NCBI GenBank assembly: GCA_950097015.1
Contig: CATNEN010000009.1
Span: 310,001 to 374,000, forward strand
DNA from: Macrostomum hystrix
Lineage: Eukaryota; Animalia; Platyhelminthes
DNA length: 64,000 bases
Direction: 5' to 3'
The notes under the pieces are model-generated. The model made no database searches. It was not told where the DNA came from and saw only the letters and a list, made by a program, of their open reading frames with translations. The position numbers and the translations under genes were made by a program. Positions 11,633-54,548 of the stretch are shown piece after piece (the stretch's first letter is position 1; every line of letters starts with the position of its first letter).

Positions 11633-12308
11633 TTGGGCAATGAAATTGTTGAAATGATGAATAAGCCTGCTATTTACCAAATAAAAGCATGCTGTTAGTT
11701 TGTGATCATTTGCAACGATAATATAAATAAAAAGTAGAGCACATTGCTTAATCGTATATTTGCTAGCTGCATAAAAACGGGCTAGAATTGAGAGAAACAA
11801 AGCAGAAGGTGAACATTGGCAAGCGCGCTGTTGCTTAAAAGGCATGGAATTGCGGACTCATTGACTACATATGGATTCCGAATGTACATTGTTAGTGCAG
11901 TATAGTTTCCAGAATAATATTAACAAAAGCACCGAGGTGGCTAAAATAGCCGATCCATGAAATTCGCAAAGCAGTTTTCACTGATTTGGCATTGCTTTGT
12001 GGACAACTTTGCATTCAGCAGACGTCATGGCAATATTGAATATAAGGCTAGAAATTGTACGTAAAGGTGTGCAAAGTTAAACAGCACTTGGTGCAAAGAG
12101 ACTAGAAAGCAGCTGCGAGATTCGGCCTAAGCAAAAAACTCCCAACCAAAAATAGCTGGAATGCAGCAAAAGCAAATCAAATTTGAACCCGGGTGTTACC
12201 ATAGACATTCACGAATATTACAATGCAGAAAAGTGTTTAGTGAGATCGCCGTCAACAGGAGCACAGGGCAAATGAAGACAGTCCGCACCGACCCTGTACT
12301 CACTGACT

Positions 12309-13625: not shown

Positions 13626-13642
13626 AAAAGATACAGTTGAGT

Positions 13643-15635: not shown

Positions 15636-17734
15636 TGCAAATGCTGAAAAATTGACAGACAATATTATCATTTTTAATATATAACAATATTAAAACACAA
15701 AGCATTATCTATTGCAAAACTTAGATGTATTATTTCTGTAGCTGCAGCCTACAATAGCTATAACTTTAGTAAATATATATTTTGTATTAAACAATAATCC
15801 ACAAGCAAAGTAGGCTTACTACCTACTGGCTACTGCATGTTAGGGAAGCTAAGATCCTACTTAGTGTTTCTGTCCTATCCTAAATTGAGATGGCAGAAAG
15901 AAAAGCAAAGGCCTAATCTATTCAAATGATCATATACAACTAAACCAAGCAATAAATATTCATAATTCAAATTAGGCATAGCTATAGGTAATAGACATTT
16001 GCCCATTTGTTTAGAGATGCAAAATGGCTCAATAATCTAGCTAGCCCAATATATATGTACATATATTTACTTTTTAAAACATCAAGGAACAAATGTCCAT
16101 ACAAATGACTCACTAAAGCTAAAAGCTAAAACAGGAAAAGAGGAATTGGGGGCAGTGAAGATAGGCCTAATGTATAGGGATGTATAGGCCTATTAAATAG
16201 GCCTGATGTTTCAGAAGCTAACTATGCATAGAATGCTATGCAAGTGCATTTTGTTCTATACTATTGAAATTAGTCCTTAGGACAGTTGGTAAGACATTAT
16301 CATCCAAAAGTCAAATTGCTTAGAATGAATAACTAAGAATACAAGAATAGCTACAATAACAATAAAATTATTAAAAGTTTTATTTCAATATTAAATAGTT
16401 AGCTGGTTAGCTTAGCTGGTTAAATATTTTTTCATAATAATATTTATGAGTAGTTAGACTGTTGCTGCTAGTTTATTGCTAGCTTAAATAAAGAAAGGAC
16501 TAAATTATTAAATAGAGTTCTTGAATTCATTGGTGAATATTGGTGAAATATAAGTTATATATCTAGGATATAGCTGCATACAGCATATCTAACGACTGTT
16601 AAATACAAAGCAACAGAAGAGCATTCAGAAAAGAAGCTCAAACCATGAATAGGTAACAAGCCCAGTGGATGTTATCTGGCTTTTCTGCTGGCCTTGAAAT
16701 AGTTCAATATCATTTTTACTTATCATTGATTTTCGCTAGAACTGGCTCTGTTGAAACAAAAATAATTAAACTCTAGTTTAAAATCATAATATATTAAGAG
16801 TATTTTACTAGAAGAGACGAGCCGACAGCTAGCATAACCTAAATTTAACAGGCTTTGAAGTACTGGTCAAAATCTATGCTTTTTTCTCTTTGTCTTCGTG
16901 CTCATGACATGAGTAACCCACCTATTCTAAAAATAGAAGTAGTATTTTATTGTGAGATTCCTGTTTGCACTAATCATTTAACTCAAAGAACAATTATATT
17001 TTAAATTTTTAATACCTTGCTCTAATTGTAAACTGATGTCATTTTAATCCCCAAATACTTGTTAATGTATATTACGCCGAAGAAGCCGGAATCCGAATCA
17101 GCTGACGAACGACGAACGAATCCACTATACTAAAAATGAAATGCTTGCTTGCTTGCTTGGTTGCTTGCTTGTAATTGATTTTCTTCCGAACGGCTCAACC
17201 GATTTTCACCATTTCTTCACCAAAAGATGCCAAATATGGGGACAATTTTACACGTATTTTTATTAAGCTAAATTCCATTGCCAAGGGGATTAAATATTCG
17301 AAAAACATGATTTTTTCAAAGGTCAAACCATCTTGGCCTATTGAGAATTTTATTACTCACTGCCGCTGAATTAGAATTGCATCGTCAAATTGCGCAACAC
17401 CCCCTCGCTGATTGAATTTGAAGCCTGCACTCTGGAGACAAATTGGAAATAAATGTACACAACCAACCGCGAGACTGAGTGTACTCTATTTTCTTACTTC
17501 ATTGTACAAAGCCAGAACTTTGAGAATTCATTTTATAAGGCTGATTTCTGCACCCACTAACCAACAGTCGGAATAGCCGATGTGTAGGCACTAGGAATAC
17601 GTTAGGCTAGGCTAGGGTTCGATTCTGCACTGCGTCAAATCATTTAGACTAATTTTCAGCCAGTAGTGATTGAAGACTATTTTATATTATTTTTTTCATT
17701 TCGTAAATAAAATATCATAAATCATAGCACACAG

Positions 17735-20700
17735 GCTAAACCAGAGTTTGAATCATGGCTAAACCAGAGTCTGAATCATGGCTAAACCAGAGTCTGAATC
17801 CTGGCTAAACCAGAGTCTGAATCCTGGCTAAACCAGAGTCTGAATCATGGCTACACCAGAGTCTGAATCATGGCTAAACCAGAGTCTGAATCCTGGCTAA
17901 ACCAGAGTCTGAATCCTGGCTAAACCAGAGTCTGAATCATGGCTACACCAGGGTTTGAATCATAGCTAAACCAGAGTTTGAATCATAGCTAAACAAGCGT
18001 CTGAATCATGGCAAAACCAGAGTTTCAATCATGGCTAAACCAGATTTTGAATTATGGATAAACAAGTGTCTGAATCATGGCTAAACCAGAGTTTGAATCA
18101 TGGCTAAATCAGAGTCTGAATCATGGCTGAACCAGAGTCTGAATCATGGCTAAACCAGAGTCTGAATCCTGGCTAAACCAGAGTCTGAATCCTGGCTAAA
18201 CCAGAGTCTGAATCATGGCTACACCAGAGTCTGAATCATGGCTAAACCAGAGTTTGAATCATGGCTAAACCAGCGTCTGAATCATGGCTAAACCAGAGTT
18301 TGAATCATGGCTAAACCAGAGACTAAATCATGGCTACACCAGGGTTTGAATCATAGCTAAACAAGCGTCTGAATCATGGCAAAACCAGAGTTTCAATCAT
18401 GGCTAAACCAGATTTTGAATTATGGATAAACAAGTGTCTGAATCATGGCTAAATCAGAGTCTGAATCATGGCTGAACCAGAGTCTGAATCATGGCTAAAC
18501 CAGAGTCTGAATCATGGCTACACCAGAGTCTGAATCATGCCAAAACCAGAGTTTTAATCATGGCTAAACCAGAGTTTGAATCATGGCTAAACAAGCGTCT
18601 GAATCATGGCTAAAGCAGAGACTAAATCATGGCTACACCAGGGTTTGAATCATGGCAAAACCAGAGTTTTAATCATGGCTAAACAAGCGTCTGAATCATG
18701 GCTAAACCAGAGTTTGAATCATGGCAAAACCAGAGTTTCAATCATGGCTAAACCAGAGTTTGAATCATGGCTAAACAGGCGTCTGAATCATGGCTAAACC
18801 AGAGACTAAATCATGGCTACACCAGGGTTTGAATCATGGCTAAACCAGAGATTAAATCATGGCTACACCAGGGTTTGAATCATGGCTAAACCAGAGATTA
18901 AATCATGGCTAAACAAGCGTCTGAATCATGGCTAAACCAGAGTTTGAATCATGGCTAAACAAGCGTCTGAATCATGGCTAAACCAGAGACTAAATCATGG
19001 CTACACCAGAATTTGAATCATGGCTAAACCAGAGACTAAATCATGGCTACACCAGGGTTTGAATCATGGCTAAACCAGAGTTTGAATCATGGCTAAACCA
19101 GAGACTAAATCATGGCTACACCAGGGTTTGAATCATGGCTAAACCAGAGACTAAATCATGGCTACACCAGAGTTTGAATCATGGCTAAACCAGAGACTAA
19201 ATCATGGCTACACCAGAGTTTGAATCATGGCTACACCAGAGTCTGAATCATGGCTAAACCAGAGTTTGAATCATGGCTAAACCAGCGTCTGAATCATGGC
19301 TAAACCAGAGTTTGAATCATGGCTAAACCAGAGACTAAATCATGGCTACACCAGGGTTTGAATCATAGCTAAACCAGAGTTTGAATCATAGCTAAACAAG
19401 CGTCTGAATCATGGCAAAACCAGAGTTTCAATCATGGCTAAACCAGATTTTGAATTATGGATAAACAAGTGTCTGAATCATGGCTAAACCAGAGTTTGAA
19501 TCATGGCTAAATCAGAGTCTGAATCATGGCTGAACCAGAGTCTGAATCATGGCTAAACCAGAGTCTGAATCATGGCTACACCAGAGTCTGAATCATGCCA
19601 AAACCAGAGTTTGAATCATGGCTAAACCAGAGTTTGAATCATGGCCAAACAAGCGTCTGAATCATGGCTAAACCAGAGACTAAATCATGGCTACACCAGG
19701 GTTTGAATCATGGCAAAACCAGAGTTTTAATCATGGCTAAACAAGCGTCTGAATCATGGCTAAACCAGAGTTTGAATCATGGCAAAACCAGAGTTTCAAT
19801 CATGGCTAAACCAGAGTTTGAATCATGGCTAAACAAGCGTCTGAATCATGGCTAAACCAGAGTTTGAATCATGGCTAAACAAGCGTCTGAATCATGGCTA
19901 AACCAGAGTTTGAATCATGGCTAAACAAGCGTCTGAATGATGGCTAAACCAGAGACTAAATCATGGCTACACCAGGGTTTGAATCATGGCTAAACCAGAG
20001 ACTAAATCATGGCTACACCAGGCTTTGAATCATGGCTAAACCAGAGACTAAATCATGGCTACACCAGAGTTTGAATCATAGCTAAACAAGCGTCTGAATC
20101 ATGGCTAAACCAGAGTTTGAATCATGGCTAAACCAGAGTTTGAATCATGGCTAAACCAGAGTTTCAACCATGGCAAAACCAGAGTTTGAATCATGGCTAA
20201 ACCAGAGACTAAATCATGGCTACACCAGGGTTTGAATCATGGCTAAACCAGAGACTAAATCATGGCTACACCAGAGTTTGAATCATAGCTAAACAAGCGT
20301 CTGAATCATGGCTAAACCAGAGTTTGAATCATGGCTAAACAAGAGTTTGAACCATGGCTAAACCAGAGTCTGAATCATGGCTAAACCAGAGTTTCAATCA
20401 TGGCTAAACCAGAGTCTGAATCATGGCTAAACAAGCGTCTGAATCATGGCTAAACCAGAGACTAAATCATGGCTACACCAGGGTTTGAATCATGGCAAAA
20501 CCAGAGTTTTAATCATGGCTAAACAAGCGTCTGAATCATGGCTAAACCAGAGTTTGAATCATGGCAAAACCAGAGTTTCAATCATGGCTAAGCCAGAGTT
20601 TGAATCATGGCTAAACAAGCGTCTGAATCATGGCTAAACCAGAGACTAAATCATGGCTACACCAGGGTTTGAATCATGGCTAAACCAGAGATTAAATCAT

Positions 20701-21040
20701 GGCTACACCAGGGTTTGAATCATGGCTAAACCAGAGTTTGAATCATGGCTACACCAGAGTTTAAATCATGGCTAAAGCAGACTTTAAATCATCACAGCGT
20801 CTGAATCATGGCTAAACCAGAGTTTGAATCATGGCTACACCAGAGTTTAAATCATGGCTAAAGCAGACTTTAAATCATCACAGCGTCTGAATCATGGCTA
20901 AACCAGAGTTTGAATCATGGCTAAATTAGAGTTTGAAACATGGTAAAACGAGAGTTTGAATCATAGCCCACCAGGGTTTAAAACATGGCGAAACCTGAGT
21001 TTGAATCTTGGCTAACCCAGCGTTTGAAAAATCAACGTCA
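17735..21040. repeat. Helitron-internal 23-bp minisatellite (TGGCTAAACCAGAGTTTGAATCA); equivalent arrays in all six copies
   Basis: 23-nt periodicity. Other arrays at ~22755-26060, 27775-31080, 32763-35470, 37565-41340 and 43012-47045. Confidence 0.95.
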
Positions 21041-21047
21041 ACTGGGG

Positions 21048-22065
21048 AGTCATCATCAAAATGGGGATCAAGGTAAACTGGAGGATAATCGTCAACTGGA
21101 GGATTTTGGTTAACTGGGGGATAATTGTCAACTGGGGGATCATTGTCAACTGTGGGATCATTGTCAACTGGGGGATCATTGTCAACTGGGGGGTAATGGT
21201 CAACTGGGGGATAATTGTAAACTGGGGAATCATCATAAACTGGGGATCATCATCAACTGGGGGATCATCATCAACTGGGGGATCATTGTCAACTGGGGGG
21301 TAATGGTCAACTGGGGGATAATTGTCAACTGGGGGAATCTTCATAAACTGGGGATCATCATCAACTGGGGGATCATCATCAACTGGGGGATCATTGTCAA
21401 CTAGGGATCATTGTCAACTGGGGGATCATTGTCAAATGGGGGATCATTGTCAACTGCGGGATCATTGTAAACTGGGGGATCATTGTCAACTGGGGGATCA
21501 TTGTCAACTGGGGGATCATGGCCAACTGGGGGATCATTGTGAACTGGGGGGATCATTGTCAACTGGGGATCATCATCAACTGGGGGATCATTGTCAACTG
21601 GGGTATCATTGTCAACTGGGGGATCATTGTCAACTGGGGGATCATTGTCAACTGGGGAATGATTGTCAACTGGGTAATCATTGTCAAGGGGGGATCATTG
21701 TCAACTGGGGGGGAATTGTCAACTGGGGGGATCATTGTCAACTGGGGGATCATTGTCAACTGGGGGAACATTGTCAACTGGGGGATCATTGTCAACTGGG
21801 GGATCATTGTCAACTGGGGGGAACATTGTCAACTGGGGGATCATTGTCAACTGGGGGGATCATTGTCAACTGGGGGATCATTGTCAACTGGGGGAACATT
21901 GTCAACTGGGGGATCATTGTCAACTGGGGGATCATTGTCAACTGGGGGGATCATTGTCAACTGGGGGAACATTGTCAACTGGGGGATCATTGTCAACTGG
22001 GGGAACATTGTCAACTGGGGGATCATTGTCAACTGGGGGAAAATTGTAGCTTAAAAAAGCTGAAA
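21048..22065. repeat. Helitron-internal 18-bp G-rich minisatellite (TGGGGGATCATTGTCAAC); equivalent arrays in all six copies
   Basis: Source of the LGDHCQ / WGIIVN / GGSLST pseudo-ORFs. Other arrays at ~26068-27085, 31088-32105, 35496-36893, 41343-42325 and 47057-48315. Confidence 0.95.
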
Positions 22066-22140
22066 ATACAGCTGCTAAAAAGTATATACAAGACGAATTA
22101 AAAATATTTCTGCTCCCCGATGGGGGGCAAAACATGCTAG

Positions 22141-25100
22141 TCCACTATACTAAAAATGAAATGCTTGCTTGCTTGCTTGGTTGCTTGCTTGTAATTGATT
22201 TTCTCCCGAACGGCTCAACCGATTTTCACCATTTCTTCACCAAAAGATGCCAAATATGGGGACAATTTTACACGTATTTTTATTAAGCTAAATTCCATTG
22301 CCAAGGGGATTAAATATTCGAAAAACATGATTTTTTCAAAGGTCAAACCATCTTGGCCTATTGAGAATTTTATTACTCACTGCCGCTGAATTAGAATTGC
22401 ATCGTCAAATTGCGCAACACCCCCTCGCTGATTGAATTTGAAGCCTGCACTCTGGAGACAAATTGGAAATAAATGTACACAACCAACCGCGAGACTGAGT
22501 GTACTCTATTTTCTTACTTCATTGTACAAAGCCAGAACTTTGAGAATTCATTTTATAAGGCTGATTTCTGCACCCACTAACCAACAGTCGGAATAGCCGA
22601 TGTGTAGGCACTAGGAATACGTTAGGCTAGGCTAGGGTTCGATTCTGCACTGCGTCAAATCATTTAGACTAATTTTCAGCCAGTAGTGATTGAAGACTAT
22701 TTTATATTATTTTTTTCATTTCGTAAATAAAATATCATAAATCATAGCACACAGGCTAAACCAGAGTTTGAATCATGGCTAAACCAGAGTCTGAATCATG
22801 GCTAAACCAGAGTCTGAATCCTGGCTAAACCAGAGTCTGAATCCTGGCTAAACCAGAGTCTGAATCATGGCTACACCAGAGTCTGAATCATGGCTAAACC
22901 AGAGTCTGAATCCTGGCTAAACCAGAGTCTGAATCCTGGCTAAACCAGAGTCTGAATCATGGCTACACCAGGGTTTGAATCATAGCTAAACCAGAGTTTG
23001 AATCATAGCTAAACAAGCGTCTGAATCATGGCAAAACCAGAGTTTCAATCATGGCTAAACCAGATTTTGAATTATGGATAAACAAGTGTCTGAATCATGG
23101 CTAAACCAGAGTTTGAATCATGGCTAAATCAGAGTCTGAATCATGGCTGAACCAGAGTCTGAATCATGGCTAAACCAGAGTCTGAATCCTGGCTAAACCA
23201 GAGTCTGAATCCTGGCTAAACCAGAGTCTGAATCATGGCTACACCAGAGTCTGAATCATGGCTAAACCAGAGTTTGAATCATGGCTAAACCAGCGTCTGA
23301 ATCATGGCTAAACCAGAGTTTGAATCATGGCTAAACCAGAGACTAAATCATGGCTACACCAGGGTTTGAATCATAGCTAAACAAGCGTCTGAATCATGGC
23401 AAAACCAGAGTTTCAATCATGGCTAAACCAGATTTTGAATTATGGATAAACAAGTGTCTGAATCATGGCTAAATCAGAGTCTGAATCATGGCTGAACCAG
23501 AGTCTGAATCATGGCTAAACCAGAGTCTGAATCATGGCTACACCAGAGTCTGAATCATGCCAAAACCAGAGTTTTAATCATGGCTAAACCAGAGTTTGAA
23601 TCATGGCTAAACAAGCGTCTGAATCATGGCTAAAGCAGAGACTAAATCATGGCTACACCAGGGTTTGAATCATGGCAAAACCAGAGTTTTAATCATGGCT
23701 AAACAAGCGTCTGAATCATGGCTAAACCAGAGTTTGAATCATGGCAAAACCAGAGTTTCAATCATGGCTAAACCAGAGTTTGAATCATGGCTAAACAGGC
23801 GTCTGAATCATGGCTAAACCAGAGACTAAATCATGGCTACACCAGGGTTTGAATCATGGCTAAACCAGAGATTAAATCATGGCTACACCAGGGTTTGAAT
23901 CATGGCTAAACCAGAGATTAAATCATGGCTAAACAAGCGTCTGAATCATGGCTAAACCAGAGTTTGAATCATGGCTAAACAAGCGTCTGAATCATGGCTA
24001 AACCAGAGACTAAATCATGGCTACACCAGAATTTGAATCATGGCTAAACCAGAGACTAAATCATGGCTACACCAGGGTTTGAATCATGGCTAAACCAGAG
24101 TTTGAATCATGGCTAAACCAGAGACTAAATCATGGCTACACCAGGGTTTGAATCATGGCTAAACCAGAGACTAAATCATGGCTACACCAGAGTTTGAATC
24201 ATGGCTAAACCAGAGACTAAATCATGGCTACACCAGAGTTTGAATCATGGCTACACCAGAGTCTGAATCATGGCTAAACCAGAGTTTGAATCATGGCTAA
24301 ACCAGCGTCTGAATCATGGCTAAACCAGAGTTTGAATCATGGCTAAACCAGAGACTAAATCATGGCTACACCAGGGTTTGAATCATAGCTAAACCAGAGT
24401 TTGAATCATAGCTAAACAAGCGTCTGAATCATGGCAAAACCAGAGTTTCAATCATGGCTAAACCAGATTTTGAATTATGGATAAACAAGTGTCTGAATCA
24501 TGGCTAAACCAGAGTTTGAATCATGGCTAAATCAGAGTCTGAATCATGGCTGAACCAGAGTCTGAATCATGGCTAAACCAGAGTCTGAATCATGGCTACA
24601 CCAGAGTCTGAATCATGCCAAAACCAGAGTTTGAATCATGGCTAAACCAGAGTTTGAATCATGGCCAAACAAGCGTCTGAATCATGGCTAAACCAGAGAC
24701 TAAATCATGGCTACACCAGGGTTTGAATCATGGCAAAACCAGAGTTTTAATCATGGCTAAACAAGCGTCTGAATCATGGCTAAACCAGAGTTTGAATCAT
24801 GGCAAAACCAGAGTTTCAATCATGGCTAAACCAGAGTTTGAATCATGGCTAAACAAGCGTCTGAATCATGGCTAAACCAGAGTTTGAATCATGGCTAAAC
24901 AAGCGTCTGAATCATGGCTAAACCAGAGTTTGAATCATGGCTAAACAAGCGTCTGAATGATGGCTAAACCAGAGACTAAATCATGGCTACACCAGGGTTT
25001 GAATCATGGCTAAACCAGAGACTAAATCATGGCTACACCAGGCTTTGAATCATGGCTAAACCAGAGACTAAATCATGGCTACACCAGAGTTTGAATCATA

Positions 25101-27160
25101 GCTAAACAAGCGTCTGAATCATGGCTAAACCAGAGTTTGAATCATGGCTAAACCAGAGTTTGAATCATGGCTAAACCAGAGTTTCAACCATGGCAAAACC
25201 AGAGTTTGAATCATGGCTAAACCAGAGACTAAATCATGGCTACACCAGGGTTTGAATCATGGCTAAACCAGAGACTAAATCATGGCTACACCAGAGTTTG
25301 AATCATAGCTAAACAAGCGTCTGAATCATGGCTAAACCAGAGTTTGAATCATGGCTAAACAAGAGTTTGAACCATGGCTAAACCAGAGTCTGAATCATGG
25401 CTAAACCAGAGTTTCAATCATGGCTAAACCAGAGTCTGAATCATGGCTAAACAAGCGTCTGAATCATGGCTAAACCAGAGACTAAATCATGGCTACACCA
25501 GGGTTTGAATCATGGCAAAACCAGAGTTTTAATCATGGCTAAACAAGCGTCTGAATCATGGCTAAACCAGAGTTTGAATCATGGCAAAACCAGAGTTTCA
25601 ATCATGGCTAAGCCAGAGTTTGAATCATGGCTAAACAAGCGTCTGAATCATGGCTAAACCAGAGACTAAATCATGGCTACACCAGGGTTTGAATCATGGC
25701 TAAACCAGAGATTAAATCATGGCTACACCAGGGTTTGAATCATGGCTAAACCAGAGTTTGAATCATGGCTACACCAGAGTTTAAATCATGGCTAAAGCAG
25801 ACTTTAAATCATCACAGCGTCTGAATCATGGCTAAACCAGAGTTTGAATCATGGCTACACCAGAGTTTAAATCATGGCTAAAGCAGACTTTAAATCATCA
25901 CAGCGTCTGAATCATGGCTAAACCAGAGTTTGAATCATGGCTAAATTAGAGTTTGAAACATGGTAAAACGAGAGTTTGAATCATAGCCCACCAGGGTTTA
26001 AAACATGGCGAAACCTGAGTTTGAATCTTGGCTAACCCAGCGTTTGAAAAATCAACGTCAACTGGGGAGTCATCATCAAAATGGGGATCAAGGTAAACTG
26101 GAGGATAATCGTCAACTGGAGGATTTTGGTTAACTGGGGGATAATTGTCAACTGGGGGATCATTGTCAACTGTGGGATCATTGTCAACTGGGGGATCATT
26201 GTCAACTGGGGGGTAATGGTCAACTGGGGGATAATTGTAAACTGGGGAATCATCATAAACTGGGGATCATCATCAACTGGGGGATCATCATCAACTGGGG
26301 GATCATTGTCAACTGGGGGGTAATGGTCAACTGGGGGATAATTGTCAACTGGGGGAATCTTCATAAACTGGGGATCATCATCAACTGGGGGATCATCATC
26401 AACTGGGGGATCATTGTCAACTAGGGATCATTGTCAACTGGGGGATCATTGTCAAATGGGGGATCATTGTCAACTGCGGGATCATTGTAAACTGGGGGAT
26501 CATTGTCAACTGGGGGATCATTGTCAACTGGGGGATCATGGCCAACTGGGGGATCATTGTGAACTGGGGGGATCATTGTCAACTGGGGATCATCATCAAC
26601 TGGGGGATCATTGTCAACTGGGGTATCATTGTCAACTGGGGGATCATTGTCAACTGGGGGATCATTGTCAACTGGGGAATGATTGTCAACTGGGTAATCA
26701 TTGTCAAGGGGGGATCATTGTCAACTGGGGGGGAATTGTCAACTGGGGGGATCATTGTCAACTGGGGGATCATTGTCAACTGGGGGAACATTGTCAACTG
26801 GGGGATCATTGTCAACTGGGGGATCATTGTCAACTGGGGGGAACATTGTCAACTGGGGGATCATTGTCAACTGGGGGGATCATTGTCAACTGGGGGATCA
26901 TTGTCAACTGGGGGAACATTGTCAACTGGGGGATCATTGTCAACTGGGGGATCATTGTCAACTGGGGGGATCATTGTCAACTGGGGGAACATTGTCAACT
27001 GGGGGATCATTGTCAACTGGGGGAACATTGTCAACTGGGGGATCATTGTCAACTGGGGGAAAATTGTAGCTTAAAAAAGCTGAAAATACAGCTGCTAAAA
27101 AGTATATACAAGACGAATTAAAAATATTTCTGCTCCCCGATGGGGGGCAAAACATGCTAG
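22141..27160 (+). mobile_element. Helitron copy 2 (subfamily A, 5020 bp)
   Basis: ORF-track entries recur at exactly +5020 (e.g. 18606/23626, 21322/26342). Confidence 0.9.
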
Positions 27161-35100: not shown

Positions 35101-36985
35101 TAAACCAGCGTCTGAATCATGGCTAAACCAGAGTTTGAATCATGGCTAAACCAGAGTTTGAATCATTGCTAAACCAGAGTCTGAATCATGGCTAAACCAG
35201 AGTCTGAATCATGGCTAAGCCAACGTTTGAATCATGGCTAACCTAGAGTCTGAATAATGGCTTAACCAGAGTTTGAATCAAGGCGAAACCAGAGTTTGAA
35301 TCATGGCTTAACCAGAGTTTGAATCATGGCTAACCTAGAGTCTGAATAATGGCTTAACCAGAGTTTGAATCATGGCTAAATTAGAGTTTGAATCATGGTA
35401 AAACGAGAGTTTGAATCATAGCCCACCAGGGTTTAAAACATGGCGAAACCTGAGTTTGAATCTTGGCTAACCCAGCGTTTGAAAAATTTGAAACGTCAAT
35501 TGGGGAGTCATCATCAAAATGGGGATCAAGGTAAACTGGGGGATAATCGTCAACTGGAGGATCTTGGTAAACTGGGGGATAATTGTCAACTGGGGGATCA
35601 TTGTCAACTGGGGGATCGTTGTGAACTGGGGGATCATTGTCAACTAGGGGGTAATGGTCAACTGGGGGATAATTGTCAACTGGGGAATCATCATAAAATG
35701 GGGGATCATGGTCAACTTGGGGATCATTGTCAACTGGGGGATCATTGTCAACTGTGGGATCATTGTCAACTGGGGGATCATTGTCAAATGAGGGATCATT
35801 GTCAACTGGGGGATCTTTGTCAACTGGGGGTTCATTGTCAACTGTGGGATCATTGTCAACCGGCGGGATCATTGTCAACTGTGGGATCATTGTCAACTGG
35901 GGGATCATTGTCAACTGGGGGATCATTGTCAAGTGGGTGATCATCATCAACTGGGGGATCATTGTCAACTGGGGGAACATTGTCAACTGGAGGAACATTG
36001 TTAACTAGGGATCATCATCAATGAGGAGACTTCATCAACTGGGGGATCATTGTGAACTGGGGGATCTTTGTTAACTGGGTGTTCATTGTCAACTGGGGGA
36101 TCATTGTCAACTGGGGGATCATCGTCAACTGGGGGATCATTGTCAACTGGAGGAACATTGTTAACTAGGGATCATCATCAATGGGGAGACTTCATCAACT
36201 GGGGGATCTTTGTTAACTGGGGGATCATTGTCAACTGGGTGATCATCATCAACTGGGGATCATTGTCAACTGGAGGAACATTGTTAACTAGGGATCATCA
36301 TTAATGGGGAGACTTCATCAACTGGGGGATCATTGTGAACTGGGGGATCTTTGTTAACTGGGGGATCATTTTCAACTGGGGGATCATTTTCAACTGGGGG
36401 ATCATCATCAACTGGGGGGATCATTGCCAACTGGGGAATCATTGTCAACTCGGTGATCATCATCAACTGGGGGATCATTGATAACTGGGGGAACATTGTC
36501 AACTGGAGGAACATTGTTAACTGGGGATCATCACCAATGGGGAGACTTCATCAACTGGGGGATCATTGTGAACTGGGGGATCTTTGTTAACTGGGGGATC
36601 ATTGTCAACTGGGGGATCATTCTCAACTGGGGGATCATTGTCAACTGGGGGATCATTCTCAACTGGGGGATCATTGTGAACTGGGGGATCTATGTCAACT
36701 GGGGGATCATTGTCAACTGTGGGATCATTGTCAACTGGGGGATCATTGTCAAATGGGGGATCATTGTCAACTGGGGGATCGTTGTCAACTGGGGGTTCAT
36801 TGTCAACTGGGGGTTTATTGTCAACTGGGGATCATCGTCAACTGGGGGATCATTGTCAACTGGGGGATCATTGTCAACTGGGGGTTCATTGTAGCTTTAA
36901 AAAGCTGTAAATTTAGCTGCTAAAAAGTCTATACTAGACGAATTAAAAGTATTTCTGCTCCCCGAAGGGGGGCAAATCTTGCTAG
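32181..36985 (+). mobile_element. Helitron copy 4 (subfamily B, 4805 bp)
   Basis: Same termini. ~25-nt deletion in the 5' part (AAACC^ACTCAC). 3' end reads GTAGCTTTAAAAAGCTGTAAAT...CTAG. Confidence 0.88.
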
Positions 36986-39900
36986 TCCACTATACTAAAA
37001 ATGAAATGCTTGCTTGGTTGTAATTGATTTTCTCCCGAACGGCTCAACCGATTTTCACCATTTCTTCACCAAAATATGCGAAATATGGGCAGAATTTTAC
37101 ACGTATTTTTATTAAGCTTAACTCCATTGCTAAGGGGATTAAATATTCGAAAAACATGATTTTGTCAAAGGTCAAACCATCTTGGCCTATTGAGAATTTT
37201 AACTCACTGCCACTGAATTAGAATTGCATCGTCAAATTGCGCAACAACCCCTAGCTGATTGAATTTGAAGCCTGCACTCTGGAGACAAATTGGAAATAAA
37301 TGTACACAACTGAGTGTACTCTATTTTCTTACTTCATTGTACAAAGCCAGAACTTTGAGAATTCATTTTATAAGGCAGATTTTTGCACCCACTAACCAAC
37401 AGTCGGAATAGCCGATGTGTAGGCACTAGGAATAAGTAAGTCTAGGCTAGGGTTCGATTCTGCACTGCGTCAAATCATTTAAACTAATTTTTAGCCAGTA
37501 GTGATTGAAGATTATTTTAATTTATTTTTTTCATTTCGTAAATAAAATATCATACATCATTGCAAATCTGAGTTTGAATAATGCAAAAATAGAGTTTGAA
37601 TCATGGCTAAACCAGAGTCTGAATCATGGCTAAACCAGATTCTGAATCATTGCTAAACCAGAGTTCGAATCATTGCTAAAACTGAGTTTTAATCATGGTT
37701 AAACAAGAGTCTGAATCATAGCTAAACCAGAGTCTCAATCATGGCTAAACCAGAGTCTCAATCATGGCTAAACCAGAGTTTGAATCATAGCTAAACCAGA
37801 GTCTGAATCATGGCTAAACCAGAGTCTGAATCATAGCTAAACCAGAGTCTGAATCATGGCTAAACCAGAGTCTCAATCATGGCTAAACCAGAGTTTAAAT
37901 CATTGCTAAACCAGAGTTTGAATCATGGCTAAACCAGAGTGTGAATCATGGCTAAACCATCGTTTGAATCATGACTAAACCAGAGTTTGAATCATAGCTA
38001 AACCAGAGTCTGAATCATGGCTAAACCAGAGTCTCAATCATGGCTAAACCAGAGTTTGAATCATTGCTAAACCAGAGTTTGAATCATGGCTAAACCAGAG
38101 TGTGAATCATGGCTAAACCAGAGTTTGAATCATGGCTAAACCATCGTTTGAATCATGGCTAAACCAGAGTTTGAATCATGGCTAAACCAGAGTTTGAATC
38201 ATGGCTAAACCATCGTTTAAATCATGGCTAAACCATTGTTTGAATCATGGCTAAACCAGAGTTTGAATCATGGCTAAACCAGAGTTTGAATCATGGCTTA
38301 ACCAGAGTTTGAATCATGGCTAAACCAGAGTCTGAATCATGGCTTAACCAGAATTTAAATCATGGCTAAACCAGAGTCTGAATCATGGCTTAACCAGAGT
38401 CTGAATCATGGCTAAACCAGAGTCTGAATCATGGCTAAACCAGAGTCTGAATCATGGCAAAACTGGAGTCTGAATCATGGCTAAACCATAGTCTGAATCA
38501 TGGCTAAAATAGAGTCTGAATCATGGCTAAAATAGAGTCTGAATCATGGCTAAACCAGAGTCTGAATCATGGCTAAAATAGAGTCTGAATCATGGCTAAA
38601 CCAGAGTCTGAATCATGGCTAAACTAGAGTCTGAATCATGGCTAAACCAGAGTCTGAATCATGGCTAAACTAGAGTCTGAATCATGGCTAAACCAGAGTC
38701 TGAATCATGGCTAAACTAGAGTCTGAATCATGGCTAAACCAGAGTCTGAATCATGGCAAAACTGGAGTCTGAATCATGGCTAAACCATAGTCTGAATCAT
38801 GGCTAAACCATAGTCTGAATCATGGCTAAACCAGAGTCTGAATCATGGCTAAACCAGAGTCTGAATCATGGCTAAACCAGCGTCTGAATCATGGCTAAAC
38901 CAGAGTCTGAATCATGGCTAAACCAGCGTCTGAATCATGGCTAAACCAGAGTTTGAATCATGGCTAAACCAGAGTTTCAATCATGGCTAAACCAGCGTCT
39001 GAATCATGGCTAAACCAGCGTCTGAATCATGGCTAAACCAGAGTCTGAATCATGGCAAAACTGGAGTCTGAATCATGGCTAAACCATAGTCTGAATCATG
39101 GCTAAACCATAGTCTGAATCATGGCTAAACCAGAGTCTGAATCATGGCTAAACCAGAGTCTGAATCATGGCTAAACCAGCGTCTGAATCATGGCTAAACT
39201 AGAGTCTGAATCATGGCTAAACTAGAGTCTGAATCATGGCTAAACCAGCGTCTGAATCATGGCTAAACCAGAGTTTGAATCATGGCTAAACCAGAGTTTC
39301 AATCATGGCTAAACCAGCGTCTGAATCATGGCTAAACCAGAGTTTGAATCATGGCTAAACCAGAGTTTCAATCATGGCTAAACCAGCGTCTGAATCATGG
39401 CTAAACCAGCGTCTGAATCATGGCTAAACCAGAGTCTGAATCATGGCAAAACTGGAGTCTGAATCATGGCTAAACCATAGTCTGAATCATGGCTAAACCA
39501 TAGTCTGAATCATGGCTAAACCAGAGTCTGAATCATGGCTAAACCAGAGTCTGAATCATGGCTAAACCAGCGTCTGAATCATGGCTAAACCAGAGTCTGA
39601 ATCATGGCTAAACCAGCGTCTGAATCATGGCTAAACCAGAGTTTCAATCATGGCTAAACCAGAGTTTCAATCATGGCTAAACCAGCGTCTGAATCATGGC
39701 TAAACCAGCGTCTGAATCATGGCTAAACCAGAGTCTGAATCATGGCAAAACTGGAGTCTGAATCATGGCTAAACCATAGTCTGAATCATGGCTAAACCAT
39801 AGTCTGAATCATGGCTAAACCAGAGTCTGAATCATGGCTAAACCAGAGTCTGAATCATGGCTAAACCAGCGTCTGAATCATGGCTAAACCAGAGTCTGAA

Positions 39901-42416
39901 TCATGGCTAAACCAGAGTCTGAATCATGGCTTAACCAGAGTTTGAATCATGGCTAAACCAGAGTCTGAATCATGGCTAAACCAGAGTTTGAATCATGGCT
40001 AAACCAGAGTCTGAATCATGGCTAAACCAGAGCCTGAATCATGGCTAAACCAGAGTCTGAATCATGGCTAAACCAGCGTCTGAATCATGGCTAAACCAGA
40101 GTTTGAATCATGGCTAAACCAGAGTTTGAATCATGGCTTAACCAGAGTTTGAAACATGGCTAAACCAGAGTCTGAATCATGGCTTAACCAGAATTTAAAT
40201 CATGGCTAAACCAGAGTCTGAATCATGGCTTAACCAGAGTCTGAATCATGGCTAAACCAGAGTCTGAATCATGGCTAAACCAGAGTCTGAATCATGGCAA
40301 AACTGGAGTCTGAATCATGGCTAAACCATAGTCTGAATCATGGCTAAAATAGAGTCTGAATCATGGCTAAAATAGAGTCTGAATCATGGCTAAACCAGAG
40401 TCTGAATCATGGCTAAAATAGAGTCTGAATCATGGCTAAACCAGAGTCTGAATCATGGCTAAACTAGAGTCTGAATCATGGCTAAACCAGAGTCTGAATC
40501 ATGGCTAAACTAGAGTCTGAATCATGGCTAAACCAGAGTCTGAATCATGGCTAAACTAGAGTCTGAATCATGGCTAAACCAGAGTCTGAATCATGGCTAA
40601 ACCAGAGTTTGAATCATGGCTAAACCAGAGTTTGAATCATGGCTTAACCAGAGTTTGAATCATGGCTAAACCAGAGTCTGAATCATGGCTTAACCAGAAT
40701 TTAAATCATGGCTAAACCAGAGTCTGAATCATGGCTAAACCAGAGTCTGAATCATGGCTAAACTAGAGTCTGAATCATGGCTAAACCAGAGTCTGAATCA
40801 TGGCTAAACTAGAGTCTGAATCATGGCTAAACTAGAGTCTGAATCATGGCTAAACCAGCGTCTGAATCATGGCTAAACCAGAGTTTGAATCATGGCTAAA
40901 CCAGAGTTTCAATCATGGCTAAACCAGCGTCTGAATCATGGCTAAACCAGAGTTTGAATCATGGCTAAACCAGAGTTTCAATCATGGCTAAACCAGCGTC
41001 TGAATCATGGCTAAACCAGCGTCTGAATCATGGCTAAACCAGAGTCTGAATCATGGCAAAACTGGAGTCTGAATCATGGCTAAACCATAGTCTGAATCAT
41101 GGCTAAACCATAGTCTGAATCATGGCTAAACCAGAGTCTGAATCATGGCTAAACCAGAGTCTGAATCATGGCTAAACCAGCGTCTGAATCATGGCTAAAC
41201 CAGAGTCTGAATCATGGCTAAACCAGAGTCTGAATCATGGCTTAACCAGAGTTTGAATCATGGCTAAACCAGAGTCTGAATCATGGCTAAACCAGAGTTT
41301 GAATCATGGCTAACCCAGCGTTTGAATCATTGCTAAACCAGAACTGGTGGATAATCGTCAACTGGGGGATCATGGTAAACTGGGGGATAATTGTCAACTG
41401 GGGGATCATTGTCAACTGGAGGATCATTGGCAACTGGGGGATAATTGTCAACTGGGGGATAATTGTCACGGGGAAACATCACCAAATGCGGGATCATAAT
41501 CAACTAGGGGATCATTGTCAACTAGGGGATCATGTTCAACTGGGGGAACATTGTCAACTGGGATCACCATCAATGGGGGATCATAGTCAACTGAGAGATA
41601 ATTGTCGACTGGGGGATAATCGTCAACTGGGGGATCATGGTCAACTGGAGGATCATTGTCAACGGGGGGATAGTTGTCAACTGGGGGATAATTGTCAACT
41701 GGGGGATCATTGTCAACTGGGAGATCATTGTCAATGTCAACTGGGGGATCATTTTCAACTGGGGATCATTGTCAACTGGTGGTTCATCATCACCCGGAGG
41801 ATCATTGTGAACTGGGGGGATCATTGTCAACTTGTTGATCATCATCAACTGGGGGATCATTGTCAACTGTGGGAACATTGTCAACTGGGGGAACGTTGTC
41901 AACTGGAGATTATCATCAATGGGGAGTCATCATTAACTGGGGGATCATTGTCAACTGCGTGATCATCATCAATTGGGGGATTATTGTCAACTCGGGGATC
42001 ATTGTCAGCTGTGGGAACATTGTCAACTGGGGATCATCATCAATGGGGAGTCATCATTAACTGGGGGATCATTGTCAACTGCGTGATCATCATCAATTGA
42101 GGGATTATTGTCAACTGGGGGATCATAATCAACTGCGTGATCATCATCAATTGAGGGATTATTGTCAACTGGGGGATCATAATCAACTGCGTGATCATCA
42201 TCAATTGGGGGATTATTGTCAACGGGGGGATCATTGTCAACTGGGGGATCATTGTCAACTGGGGGATTATTGTCAACTGGGGGATCTTTATCAACTGTGG
42301 GATCATTGTCAACTGATCATTGTAGCGTAAAAAGGCTGAAAATGCAGCTGCTAAAAAGTGTATACTGGACGAAATCAAAATATTTCTGCTCCCCGAAGGG
42401 GGGCAAAACTTGCTAG
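36986..42416 (+). mobile_element. Helitron copy 5 (subfamily C, 5431 bp)
   Basis: Same termini. Shorter CTTG microsatellite, private deletion near 37310, different 23-bp/18-bp array junction, distinct 3' end. Confidence 0.88.
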
Positions 42417-45400
42417 TCCACTATACTAAAAATGAAATGCTTGCTTGCTTGCTTGCTTGGTTGCTTGTAACTGATTTTCTCCCGAACGGCTCAACCAATT
42501 TTCACCATTTCTTCACCAAAAGATGCCAAATATGGGGACAATTTTACACGTATTTTTATTAAGCTTAACTTTATTGCTAAAGGGATTAAATATTCGAAAA
42601 ACATGATTTTTCAAAGGTCAAATTCAAAGGTCAAACCACTCACTGCCACTGAATTAGAATTGCATCGTCAAATTGCGCAACAACCCCTAGCTGATTGAAT
42701 TTGAAGCCTGCACTCTGGAGACAAATTGGAAATAAATGTACACAACCAACCGCGAGACTGAGTGTACTCTATTTTCTTACTTCATTGTACAAAGCCAGAA
42801 CTTTGAGAATTCATTTTATAAGGCTGATTTCTGCACCCACTAACCAACAGTCGGAATAGCCGATGTGTTAGGCACTAGGAATAAGTTAGGCTAGGCTAGG
42901 GTTCGATTCTGCACTGCGTCAAATCATTTAGACTAATTTTCAGCCAGTAGTGATTGAAGATTATTTTGATTTATTTTTTTCATTTCGTAAATAAAATATC
43001 ATGAATCATAGCAAACCTGAATTTGAATCATGGCAAAAATAGAGCTTGAATCATGGCTAAACCAGCGTCTGAATCATGGCTAAACCAGAGTCTGAATCAT
43101 GGCTTAACTAGAGTTTGAATCATGGCTAAACCAGAGTCTGAATCATGGCTAAACCAGCGTCTGAATCATGGCTAAAGCAGAGTTTGAATCATGGCTAAAC
43201 CAGAGTCTGAATCATGGCTTAACCAGAGTTTGAATCATGGCTAAACCAGAGTTTGAATCATGGCTAAACCAGAGTTTGAATCATGGCTAAACCAGAGTTT
43301 GAATCATGGCTAAACCAGAGTTTGAGTCATGGCTAAACCAGAGTCTGAATCATGGCTAAACCAACGTTTGAATCATGGCTAACCTAGAGTCTGAATCATG
43401 GCTAAACCATAGTCTGAATCATTGCTAAAATAGAGTCTGAATCATGGCTAAACCAGAGTCTGAATCATGGCTAAACCAGAGTCTGAATCATGGCTAAACT
43501 AGAGTCTGAATCATGGCTAAACCAGAGTCTGAATCATGGCTAAACTAGAGTCTGAATCATGGCTAAACCAGAGTTTGAACCATGGCTAAACCAGAGTTTG
43601 AATCATGGCTAAACCAGCGTCTGAATCATGGCTAAACCAGCGTCTGAATCATGGCTAAACCAGAGTTTGAATCATGGCTAAACCAGAGTTTGAATATTGG
43701 CAACACCAGAGTTTGAATCATGGCTAAACCAGCGTCTGAATCATGGCTAAACCAGAGTTTGAATCATGGCTAAACCAGAGACTAAATCATGGCTAAACCA
43801 TCATCATCAGCATGGCTAAACCAGAGTTTGAATCATGGCTAAACCAGAGTTTGAATCATGGCTAAACCAGAGTTTGAATCATGGCTAAACCAGAGTCTGA
43901 ATCATGGCTAAACCAGAGTTTGAATCATGGCTAAACCAGAGTCTGAATCATGGCTTAACCAGAGTTTGAATCATGGCTAAACCAGAGTTTGAATCATGGC
44001 TAAACCAGAGTCTGAATCATGGCTAAACCAGCGTCTGAATCATGGCTAAACCAGAGTTTGAATCATGGCTAAACCAGAGTCTGAATCATGGCTTAACTAG
44101 AGTTTGAATCATGGCTAAACCAGAGTCTGAATCATGGCTAAACCAGCGTCTGAATCATGGCTAAAGCAGAGTTTGAATCATGGCTAAACCAGAGTCTGAA
44201 TCATGGCTTAACCAGAGTTTGAATCATGGCTAAACCAGAGTTTGAATCATGGCTAAACCAGAGTTTGAATCATGGCTAAACCAGAGTTTGAATCATGGCT
44301 AAACCAGAGTTTGAGTCATGGCTAAACCAGAGTCTGAATCATGGCTAAACCAACGTTTGAATCATGGCTAACCTAGAGTCTGAATCATGGCTAAACCATA
44401 GTCTGAATCATTGCTAAAATAGAGTCTGAATCATGGCTAAACCAGAGTCTGAATCATGGCTAAACCAGAGTCTGAACCATGGCTAAACCAGAGTTTGAAT
44501 CATGGCTAAACCAGCGTCTGAATCATGGCTAAACCAGCGTCTGAATCATGGCTAAACCAGAGTTTGAATCATGGCTAAACCAGAGTTTGAATATTGGCAA
44601 CACCAGAGTTTGAATCATGGCTAAACCAGCGTCTGAATCATGGCTAAACCAGAGTTTGAATCATGGCTAAACCAGAGACTAAATCATGGCTAAACCAACA
44701 TCATCAGCATGGCTAAACTAGAGTTTGAATCATGGCTAAACCATCATCATCAGCATGGCTAAACTAGAGTTTGAATCATGGCTAAACCAGAGTTTGAATA
44801 ATGGCTACACCAGAGTTTGAATCATGGCTAAACCAGATCTTGAATCATGGCTAAACTAGAGTTTGAATCATGGCTAAACCAGAGTCTGAATCATGGCTAA
44901 ACCAGCGTCTGAATCATGGCTAAAGCAGAGTTTGAATCATGGCTAAACCAGAGTCTGAATCATGGCTTAACCAGAGTTTGAATCATGGCTAAACCAGAGT
45001 TTGAATCATGGCTAAACCAGAGTTTGAATCATGGCTAAACCAGATCTTGAATCATGGCTAAACTAGAGTTTGAATCATGGCTAAACCAGAGTCTGAATCA
45101 TGGCTAAACCAGCGTCTGAATCATGGCTAAAGCAGAGTTTGAATCATGGCTAAACCAGAGTCTGAATCATGGCTTAACCAGAGTTTGAATCATGGCTAAA
45201 CCAGAGTTTGAATCATGGCTAAACCAGAGTTTGAATCATGGCTAAACCAGATCTTGAATCATGGCTAAACTAGAGTTTGAATCTTGGCTAAACCAGAGTC
45301 TGAATCATGGCTAAACCAGCGTCTGAATCATGGCTAAAGCAGAGTTTGAATCATGGCTAAACCAGAGTCTGAATCATGGCTAAACCAGAGTCTGAATCAT

Positions 45401-48400
45401 GGCTAAACCAGAGTTTGAATCATGGCTAAACCAGAGTTTGAATCATGGCTTAACCAGAGTTTGAATCATGGCTAAACCAGAGTTTGAATCATGGCTAAAC
45501 CAGAGTTTGAATCATGGCTAAACCAGAGTTTGAATCATGGCTAAACCAGAGTTTGAGTCATGGCTAAACCAGAGTCTGAATCATGGCTAAACCAACGTTT
45601 GAATCATGGCTAACCTAGAGTCTGAATCATGGCTAAACCATAGTCTGAATCATTGCTAAAATAGAGTCTGAATCATGGCTAAACCAGAGTTTGAATCATG
45701 GCTAAACCAGATCTTGAATCATGGCTAAACTAGAGTTTGAATCTTGGCTAAACCAGAGTCTGAATCATGGCTAAACCAGCGTCTGAATCATGGCTAAAGC
45801 AGAGTTTGAATCATGGCTAAACCAGAGTCTGAATCATGGCTAAACCAGAGTCTGAATCATGGCTAAACCAGAGTTTGAATTATGGCTAAACCAGAGTTTG
45901 AATCATGGCTAAACCAGAGTTTGAATCATGGCTAAACCAGAGTTTGAATCATGGCTAAACCAGAGTTTGAATCATGGCTAAACCAGAGTTTGAATCATGG
46001 CTAAACCAGAGTTTGAGTCATGGCTAAACCAGAGTCTGAATCATGGCTAAACCAACGTTTGAATCATGGCTAACCTAGAGTCTGAATCATGGCTAAACCA
46101 TAGTCTAAATCATTGCTAAAATAGAGTCTGAATCATGGCTAAACCAGAGTCTGAATCATGGCTAAACCAGAGTCTGAATCATGGCTAAACTAGAGTCTGA
46201 ATCATGGCTAAACCAGAGTCTGAATCATGGCTAAACTAGAGTCTGAATCATGGCTAAACCAGAGTTTGAACCATGGCTAAACCAGAGTTTGAATCATGGC
46301 TAAACCAGCGTCTGAATCATGGCTAAACCAGCGTCTGAATCATGGCTAAACCAGAGTTTGAATCATGGCTAAACCAGAGTTTGAATATTGGCAACACCAG
46401 AGTTTGAATCATGGCTAAACCAGCGTCTGAATCATGGCTAAACCAGAGTTTGAATCATGGCTAAACCAGAGACTAAATCATGGCTAAACCATCATCATCA
46501 GCATGGCTAAACTAGAGTTTGAATCATGGCTAAACCATCATCATCAGCATGGCTAAACTAGAGTTTGAATCATGGCTAAACCAGAGTTTGAATAATGGCT
46601 ACACCAGAGTTTGAATCATGGCTAAACCAGAGTCTGAATCATGGCTAAACTAGAGTTTGAATCATGGCTAAACCAGAGTTTGAATAATGGCTACACCAGA
46701 GTTTGAATCATGGCTAAACCAGAGTCTGAATCATGGCTAAACCAGAGTTTGAATCTTGGCTAAACCAGAGTTTCAATCATGGCTAACCCAGCGTTTGAAT
46801 CATGGCTAAACCAGAGTTTGAATCATGGCAAAAACCGAGTTTCAATCATGGCTAACCCAGCGTTTGAATCATGGCTAAACCAGAGTTTGAATCATAGCCA
46901 ACCAGAGTTTGAATCTTGGCTAAACCAGAGTTTGAATCATAGCCAACCAGAGTCTGAATCATGGCAAAACGAGAGTTTGAATCATAGCCCACCAGGGTTT
47001 AAAACATGGCGAAACCTGAGTTTGAATCTTGGCTAACCCAGCGTTTGAAAAATCAACGTCAACTGGGGAGTCATCATCAAAATGGGGATCATGGTGAACT
47101 GGGGGATCATGGTAAACTGGGGGATAATTGTCGACTGGGGGATCATTGTCAACTGGGGGATCATTGTCAACTGGGGGATCATTGTCAACTGGGGGATCAT
47201 TGTCAACTGGGGGATCATTGTCAAATGGGGTATCATTGTCAACTGGGGGATCTTTGTCAACTGGGGGTTCATTGTCAACTGGGGGTTCATTGTCAACTGG
47301 GGGATCATTGTCAACTGGGGGATCATTGTGAACTGAGAGATCATTGTCAACTGGGGGGTAATGGTCAACTGGGGGATAATTGTCAACTGGGGAATCATCA
47401 TCAACTGGGGATCATCATCAACTGGGGGATCATTGAGAACTGGGGGATCTTTGTCAACTGGGGGATCATTGTGAACTGGGGGATCTTTGTCAACTGGGGG
47501 ATCATTGTATACTGTGGGATCATTGTCAACTGGGGGATCATTGTCAACTGGGGGATCATTGTCAACTGGGGGATCGTTGTCAACTGGGGGGTCATTGTCA
47601 ACTGGGGGAACATTGTCAACTGGAGGAACATTGTTAACTAGGGATCATCATCAATGGGGAGACTTCATCAACTGGGGGACCATTGTGAACTGGGGGATCT
47701 TTGTTAACTGGGGGATCATTGTCAACTGGGGGATCATTCTCAACTGGGGGATCATTGTCAACTGGGGGATCATTTTCAACTGGGGGATCATCATCAACTG
47801 GAGGATCATTGTCAACTGGGGGATCATTGTCAACTGGGGGATCATTGTCAACTGGGGGATCATTGTCAACTGGGTGATCATCATCAACTGGGGGATCATT
47901 GTCAACTGGGGGAACATTGTCAAATGGAGGAACATTGTTAACTGGGGATCATCATCAATGGGGAGACTTCATCAACTGGGGGATCATTGTGAACTGGGGG
48001 ATCTTTGTTAACTGGGGGATCATTGTCAACTGGGGGATCATTGTCAACTGGGGGATCATTTTCAACTGGGGGATCATCATCAACTGGGGGATCATCATCA
48101 ACTGGGTGATCATTGTGAACTGGGGGATCTTTGTCAACTGGGGGATCATTGTCAACTGTGGGATCATTGTCAACTGGGGGATCATTGTCAAATGGGGGAT
48201 CATTGTCAACTGGGGGATCGTTGTCAACTGGGGGTTCATTGTCAACTGGGGGTTCATTGTCAACTGGGGGATCATTGTCAACTGGGGGATCATTGTCAAC
48301 TGGGGGTTCATTGTAGCTTTAAAAAGCTGTAAATTCAGCTGCTACAAAGTATATACTAGACGAATTAAAAGTATTTCTGCTCTCCGAAGGGGGGCAAAAC

Positions 48401-48407
48401 TTGCTAG
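42417..48407 (+). mobile_element. Helitron copy 6 (subfamily B', 5991 bp)
   Basis: Shares the 5' deletion and 3' diagnostic bases with copy 4. Hairpin GCTCTCCGAAGGGGGGC + CTAG. Confidence 0.88.
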
Positions 48408-50187: not shown

Positions 50188-50313
50188 CTGCTATCACTGT
50201 ATTGGAATCTGCTATCACTGTATTGGAATCTGCTATCACTGTATTGGAATCTGCTATCACTGTATTGGAATCTGCTATCACTGTATTGGAATCTGCTATC
50301 ACTGTATTGGAAT
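50188..50313. repeat. 21-bp tandem repeat x6 upstream of GID8
   Basis: Unit CTGCTATCACTGTATTGGAAT. Confidence 0.92.
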
Positions 50314-50420
50314 CAGTGCGGCCTGCCAACCTGCAATTCCAGCGCATTCGCCTTGGAATTCGACACCTGGCGCCGGCCGAGCCCGCGTCCACCCTGCCAG
50401 CGACTGCCACCATAACCTCA

Positions 50421-54488: not shown

Positions 54489-54548
54489 CTTAAGGCTTTG
54501 ATGAGAAAAGTAAAATTTCTCCATGTTGCGTCTTCTGCACACTTTCAG

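Follow-up and report, generated by a model that had tools for sequence, protein, structure and literature searches.

A composite 31-kb train of six non-autonomous and very probably canonical Helitrons in an animal genome

Helitrons with internal satellites and head-to-tail Helitron arrays have been published from bats, maize, other plants, frogs, cnidarians, ciliates, and oysters (PMC2267711, PMC5876387, PMC12001565, PMC13085455, PMC12628747). The carriers of internal satellites, Helitrons as well as Helentrons, are described from Drosophila, oysters, Xenopus, Paramecium, and Hydractinia (PMC12628747, PMC12001565, PMC13085455, bioRxiv 10.1101/2024.11.21.624632). According to the account in Du et al. 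2008 (PMC2267711), exact CTAG^TC pairs of Helitrons (^ marks the junction) were reported in bat (Helibat) and maize by Pritham and Feschotte 2007. Du et al. favoured consecutive insertion of such pairs since the two elements differed (PMC2267711), and tandem arrays have been cited in support of rolling-circle transposition (PMC5876387). Circles closed at CTAG^TC are real intermediates (PMC4778049). The locus described here lies in a 64-kb window (G000:C9:310001-374000; the window means this whole stretch) of a 220-Mb animal genome of 42 contigs, in which all genomic searches were made. Its positions 17121–48407 are occupied by a block that is very probably a train of canonical Helitrons, composed of six non-autonomous units that each carry two minisatellites.

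Unit boundaries were set by exact-match search in the window; a generic repeat search of the array gave only the 23-bp register and was uninformative. Six exact copies of the 20-nt 5' end were found on the plus strand (17121, 22141, 27161, 32181, 36986, and 42417) and zero copies on the minus strand of the window. All six units start with TCCACTATAC, and the starts of units 2 to 6 each stand directly after ...CTCCCCGA(A/T)GGGGGGCAAA(A/T)C(A/T)TGCTAG, the end of unit 6 (48407) being alike. The units are all on one strand and are fused at five CTAG^TC joins with zero spacer. The block has A at 17120 and T at 48408, and no direct repeat of 2–8 nt, and so no target site duplication (TSD), flanks it. 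The 3' hairpin has an 8-bp stem and a 3-nt loop, is located 11 nt from the unit end, and folds with −6.6 kcal/mol as DNA (z −1.9). In each unit, Tandem Repeats Finder recognized a 23-bp array (~114–167 copies) followed by an 18-bp array (43–65 copies), and these two minisatellites make up 79–83% of each unit. The heads (~610 bp) and tails (~100 bp) of the six units align with few indels and 92% mean column identity. Unit 3 repeats unit 2 exactly and unit 1 deviates from both at a single base, so that the six units are four distinct sequences; as units 1–3 are near-identical, their junctions are copies of one junction and not independent events. Scanning the window for Rfam families and tRNAs gave no matches, so that the head's tRNA-like GGTTCGATTC stretch is no recognizable tRNA or short interspersed element. 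Coordinates of all features are listed in Table 1.

Table 1. Features of the window, and putative autonomous copies found on other contigs (window positions unless a contig is given)
Feature	Position	Strand	Remarks
Whole array, six non-autonomous Helitron units, one insertion site	17121..48407	+	six starts and five exact CTAG^TC joins; A on the left, T on the right; no TSD
Unit 1, 5020 bp	17121..22140	+	one base differs from unit 2, unit position 65
Unit 1 head	17121-17733	+	
Unit 1 23-bp minisatellite	17734-21028	+	
Unit 1 18-bp minisatellite	21037-22040	+	
Unit 1 tail	hairpin 22111-22129, then terminal CTAG	+	
Unit 2, 5020 bp	22141..27160	+	equals unit 3 exactly
Unit 3, 5020 bp	27161..32180	+	equals unit 2 exactly
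Unit 4, 4805 bp	32181..36985	+	18-bp array 35521-36892; lineage common to unit 6 and C30 tandem copies
Unit 5, 5431 bp	36986..42416	+	18-bp array 41342-42315; own lineage, interior nearest C30, C7, and C32 copies
Unit 6, 5991 bp	42417..48407	+	23-bp array 43002-47049; 18-bp array 47058-48314; one mismatch in the stem of hairpin 48378-48396
Right flank TCCAATTAGCTAT	48408..48420	+	T at +1, first four bases equal the element start, GCTA at +9; loose match to target motif
Ig-domain exon	15144-15671	-	
LisH exon	~50517-50597	+	
CTLH/CRA exon	52005-52565	+	E 2e-19
RRM protein gene	56063-57718	+	
Tyrosine kinase gene	58881-60546	-	
Putative autonomous copy, 14.2 kb	C1:10163711-10177944		Rep PF14214 E 3e-43, PIF1 E 1e-37, exact 3' 31-mer
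Putative autonomous copy	C1:3511283-3531437		
Putative autonomous copy	C1:10780544-10799369		
Putative autonomous copy	C7:6741448 to ~6758011		
Putative autonomous copy	C29:5629316 to ~5615700	-	

The 5' TC of canonical Helitrons is present in the six units and in 265 genomic copies, all of them TCCACTATAC starts; the 3' CTRR is represented by the CTAG at the ends of the six units, and the units have a GC-rich subterminal 3' hairpin. Terminal inverted repeats (TIRs) are absent, as only 4 of 30 positions match when the 5' end is compared to the reverse-complemented 3' end. All 12 of the sampled 3' ends have T at +1, as do ~94 of the 100 12-mer matches listed, with the rest corresponding to the chance rate. 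In 55 non-junction 5' flanks, the base at −1 was A 25, T 12, C 11, and G 7 times. No transposase coding capacity was found in the units, which consist of minisatellite, a 610-bp head, and a 100-bp tail, with long open reading frames only inside the repeats. Membership in Helentron/Helitron2 was rejected because there is no TIR and the 5' 50 nt do not fold (−0.7 kcal/mol); moreover, position −1 is mostly occupied by A or by the last base of CTAG, unlike the TT or T(T/C) insertion of Helentron/Helitron2. The TCCA at both array ends was considered as a TSD, and this was rejected as well, since solo copies standing after TCC or CCA have unrelated 3' flanks. The initial annotation had described six units of 4.8–6.0 kb with TC, hairpin, and CTAG ends, zero spacer, A...T flanks, and no TSD, which is exact to the base, although the six it counted are the four sequences named above. 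Its reading of the termini as canonical Helitron ends agrees with the missing TSD and TIRs, the dispersed copies, and the T after 3' ends. It had also claimed A^T insertion sites; T follows every sampled 3' end, but A precedes only ~45% of the non-junction 5' ends, and A^T is a preference of this Helitron family and not a rule.

The family is dispersed in the genome. The 5' 24-mer has 265 genomic matches at ≤1 mismatch and the 3' 31-mer has 534 at ≤2 mismatches, while the reversed-pattern controls gave 0 matches in both cases. Fourteen dispersed loci were read through 10 kb, and the terminal 3' end was readable in twelve of them. Among these twelve are solo copies as well as arrays; their flanks are unrelated, the terminal CTAG is followed at once by T, and there is no TSD. 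The dispersed elements are 2.7–6.7 kb long, the variation being in minisatellite copy number, and two copies of equal length (4496 bp) are at different loci. Both minisatellites are present in all dispersed copies, including those of a sister subfamily starting with TCTAATATAC. Profile searches of the genome gave 67 matches to Rep (PF14214) and more than 160 to PIF1 (PF05970). According to match coordinates, five loci of 13.6–20 kb have the 5' 24-mer, Rep, PIF1, and the family 3' terminus in that order on one strand, and are putative autonomous copies (Table 1); the head of the 14.2-kb copy is 94% identical to the window head over the first 600 bp. A Rep exon of a related lineage with the same 3' terminus (2e-51 against PF14214) stops after a QKRG motif, as expected at an intron.

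Three further observations concern these relatives. Upstream of the 14.2-kb Rep/PIF1 copy (C1:10163699-10163733), there is the 3' end of another Helitron minus its last base (...CAAAACTTGCTA^TCCACT), which makes an imperfect junction. A separate and seemingly intron-less Helitron lineage is present on C38 (C38:19323713-19332731 and C38:28197590-28200184), with open frames of 1702–1840 amino acids covering Rep and PIF1 and with two tandem copies 6424 bp apart. At locus L036, the same 30-nt flank and TCCACT head occur twice (L036:101 and L036:2391), 2290 bp apart; because this repeat includes the host flank, it is a local duplication and not a transposition event.

The block is probably a composite train, in which serial insertion at start-like targets was combined with a recent triplication. 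A maximum-likelihood tree was computed from 38 heads of window units and dispersed copies (support is given as two values), and the six window units need at least three origins on its well-supported branches. Units 1–3 were grouped together with a C38 copy (97/89) and units 4 and 6 with C30 tandem copies (99/97), unit 6 being nearer the C30 copies than unit 4, while unit 5 is apart, among other copies. The interiors give a similar picture in 60-mers: unit 4 has 23% in common with a C30 copy vs 12% with unit 6, unit 5 has 41–44% in common with C30, C7, and C32 copies, and unit 6 has 35% in common with a C38 copy. Among themselves, the interiors of units 4, 5, and 6 have at most 12% of 60-mers in common, compared to 23–44% with other contigs. 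Since the head tree and the fast-evolving minisatellite interiors agree, the array comes neither from a single concatemer nor from local amplification of one founder. A recent local copy, a multimer, or an assembly effect is suggested by units 1–3 alone; the mutual closeness of units that marks a macrosatellite grown by unequal crossing-over is restricted to these three and is not seen across the array.

Exact stacking is common elsewhere in the genome. The end AAAACTTGCTAG is followed by TC-N7-CTAA in 145 cases and by T and a non-C base in 278. Among the 100 junction matches listed, 95 are recognizable Helitron starts of at least six types (~53 TCCACTATAC, 25 TCTAATATAC, 7 TCTTATATAC, and the rest rarer types), and CTAG is directly before 45 of the 100 5' ends listed. 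About one third of the family 3' ends are in an exact head-to-tail junction with another Helitron start. Three sister heads in the tree, L013, L014, and L019 (the first two 0.4% apart), illustrate the pattern: one is solo at ...gatcca^...CTAG^TTTTTTGCTAAAAAA (T-TTTTTG-CTAAAA), and the other two are directly upstream of two different TCTAAT-type Helitrons. This would be expected from independent insertions onto resident starts, although downstream insertion of the partners could also have produced it. That a TCCACT and TCTAAT heterodimer had moved as a composite to two loci was rejected, as the downstream partners are different elements. The genome searches proposed in the initial annotation have thus given 265 5' and 534 3' matches, dispersed copies that keep TC/CTAG without TSD, five putative loci for an autonomous RepHel partner with the same termini, and, for solo versus tandem copies, about one third of 3' ends abutting another start. 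Its description of the locus as an unusual three-level repeat was overstated, in view of both minisatellites in every dispersed copy, the share of ends in junctions, and the published parallels.

Two other trains have internal periods. The train at C14:695492-720881 has an exact 8710-bp period repeated three times with two alternating units, and that at C1:25816478-25848518 has a repeating series of 4902/4773/5078 bp; such exact higher-order periods indicate block duplication inside trains. Also, a 337-bp mini-Helitron was found at L044:164-500 and L035:4136-4480, with the start TCTAATATAC, the hairpin GCTACCC-AGA-GGGTAGC, and the end GGCAGCTAG; in L044 it is exactly joined to a TCCACT head. 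With its other hairpin and its TCTAATATAC start, it represents a second terminator type with the same kind of start.

Other explanations of the block differ in how well they agree with these results. It is unlikely, but less so than the others, that the three 5020-bp units are an assembly artefact and that the true locus has fewer or more units. Over 5 kb, of which 80% is minisatellite and hard to assemble, units 2 and 3 show 100% identity; the private base in unit 1, the exact multi-unit repeats in other arrays of the family, and the megabase contigs, which suggest long accurate reads, speak against an artefact and are not decisive. Rather improbable is a formation of the array or its parts elsewhere, followed by movement as a composite in which the internal terminators were skipped and the last one was used. 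Terminator read-through is documented for Helraiser (PMC4778049), and the whole block has one A...T site and no TSD, but the same unit order was not found twice among the sampled loci, and in the one case compared, the different downstream partners of the sister heads point to separate insertions. Local, macrosatellite-like growth by unequal crossing-over or replication slippage from one founder element or dimer could produce the near-identical units 1–3 and the exact higher-order periods of the C14 and C1 trains, but it is very unlikely for the whole block, as it explains neither the nearest relatives of units 4–6 on other contigs nor the junctions between different Helitron families elsewhere. 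The least probable is one rolling-circle multimer, a concatemer integrated once from a circular intermediate, for which CTAG^TC as the Helraiser circle junction, the classical account of tandem Helitrons as concatemers (PMC4778049, PMC5876387), and units 1–3, identical but for one base, can be cited, because a single circle gives identical units whereas units 4–6 differ in head indels and lineages and have interiors nearer to other contigs, so that this reading is viable for units 1–3 only.

The flanks of the family contain a short motif. CTAA starting at +6 to +10 after the 3' end (T-N(4-8)-CTAA, mode +8) was recognized in 166 of 278 non-junction 3' flanks (60%), compared to 16 of 278 (6%) for CTAA at +16 to +20 as the offset control. 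The sequences between T and CTAA and beyond CTAA are diverse across the flanks, which therefore do not come from a single repeat. The element's own start is T-CCACTATA-CTAAAA, with CTAA at +10. On the other side, TCC ends 10 of the 55 non-junction 5' flanks vs ~1.5% expected, and it may represent either start letters displaced by insertion inside a resident start or an upstream part of the target motif. In several 5' flanks, TCC(A/T) is repeated two to three times just before TCCACT (e.g., C1:1343853, C1:16694296, and C3:370895). The left end TCC-ACTATA-CTAA is similar to reconstructed empty sites such as gtcc^TACATTGCTAAT and ctcc^TAAAAAATCTAAAG. We infer that Rep would recognize one short sequence both in the left end of the element and in its targets. 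There is about an even chance that the targets chosen by the family imitate its left end, with an optional TCC, the cut, T, 6–7 bases, and CTAA, and that the motif survives insertion, so that occupied sites and resident starts stay hot. For Helraiser targets, only A^T and AT-richness, strongest on the 3' side, are described (PMC4778049). The flank-motif statistic is the only part of the present result that was not found described.

For the composite train, a mechanism with the following steps can be proposed. The units would be mobilized in trans by RepHel-coding copies with the same two termini, and copies from at least three sublineages would have been inserted one after another at one place. 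The transposase would prefer to cut just before a T with CTAA 6–7 bases further on; as the CTAA is 3' of the cut, insertion would leave the motif intact. Every resident Helitron start (T-CCACTATA-CTAA) would also bear the motif, and hence the occupied site and the resident starts would remain targets, with each new insertion creating an exact CTAG^TC junction. Finally, one 5020-bp unit would have been triplicated very recently, either through unequal crossing-over or in the form of a rolling-circle multimer. In this scheme, reading of the motif by Rep would be the cause of stacking. The T-N6/7-CTAA preference is proposed, by analogy, to follow an IS608-like target logic; Barabas et al. in 2008 reportedly linked the choice of IS608 targets to sequence recognized at the end of the element itself.

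Several points weigh against the composite train with this mechanism. Neither an empty allele nor a partly filled one, which would show the order of insertions, was seen, and the identity of units 1–3 could be an assembly effect. The Rep and PIF1 matches of the putative autonomous copies are intron-split, and the PIF1 matches hold one in-frame TAA; nothing in the data indicates current activity of the family. The flank motif may partly represent old unrecognized Helitron starts and not naive targets, its spacing is mostly +8 in flanks vs +10 at the element's own start, and the right flank of the block in the window has CTAT and not CTAA. If target mimicry is true, trains would be a direct and predictable product of transposase specificity and not rolling-circle multimers. 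This would settle the 2007–2008 debate on tandem replication versus consecutive insertion for this Helitron family and would provide a target rule that is defined by sequence and goes further than A^T. With the motif as the target rule, hundreds of natural junctions would be available for working out Rep target choice and train build-up.

The surroundings of the array are rich in other repeats. Nearly all non-coding sequence at 1–16000 and 50000–64000 of the window consists of other minisatellites (17-mer ×192, 20-mer ×117, 45-mer ×20, 31-mer ×32, 25-mer ×53, 27/54-mer, 44-mer ×24, 34/63-mer, 73-mer ×15, 24/43-mer, and 20-mer ×19), and the termini of the Helitron family are absent from those minisatellites in both regions. 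Between the LisH and CTLH/CRA exons (50115–52565), there are a 50-mer repeat and a 44-bp minisatellite (50937–51982), and this gap looks like an intron that is almost wholly tandem repeat. The Ig, tyrosine kinase, RRM, and LisH/CTLH exons show an animal-type genome only.

Among known systems, the bacterial HUH elements IS608 and IS91 are similar in having no target duplication, and the integration of IS608 is site-specific (PMC5876387). They have another protein architecture (IS608 is without a fused helicase) and are prokaryotic, and the likeness is mechanistic only. Drosophila DINE-TR1, the oyster Cg170 carriers, and Xenopus Heli2Xen (PMC12001565) have, like the present family, conserved termini around minisatellite arrays of variable copy number, as do the LTS-satellite-RTS elements of Paramecium (PMC13085455) and the subtelomeric Helitron arrays of Hydractinia (bioRxiv 10.1101/2024.11.21.624632), and all of them are carriers and seeds of satellite DNA. 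Several of these elements with internal repeats are Helentron/Helitron2 with TIRs, whereas the units here have canonical ends and two minisatellites side by side. Helitron arrays of plant centromeres, often truncated (Xiong, Dooner and Du 2016, as presented in PMC12628747 and PMC5876387), also form head-to-tail satellite-like blocks. As summarized in those two sources, a typical array of this kind combines numerous 5' ends with only one 3' end, which is explained by aberrant rolling-circle replication; here, by contrast, each unit is complete at both ends, and different sublineages have contributed units. The bat and maize pairs, as presented by Du et al., are the closest, with the same exact CTAG^TC junction, G^T replacing the A^T boundary, and the same two competing explanations, tandem copying by a rolling circle and consecutive insertion, which were both discussed at the time. 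In place of pairs, there are six units of ~5 kb here, about one third of the family ends are in junctions, and a downstream flank motif could explain the stacking. The principle of a Helitron train with minisatellites is thus already published, and it is common in this genome; the present locus is a base-exact example of how a transposon family carrying minisatellites builds a satellite-like block of 31 kb.

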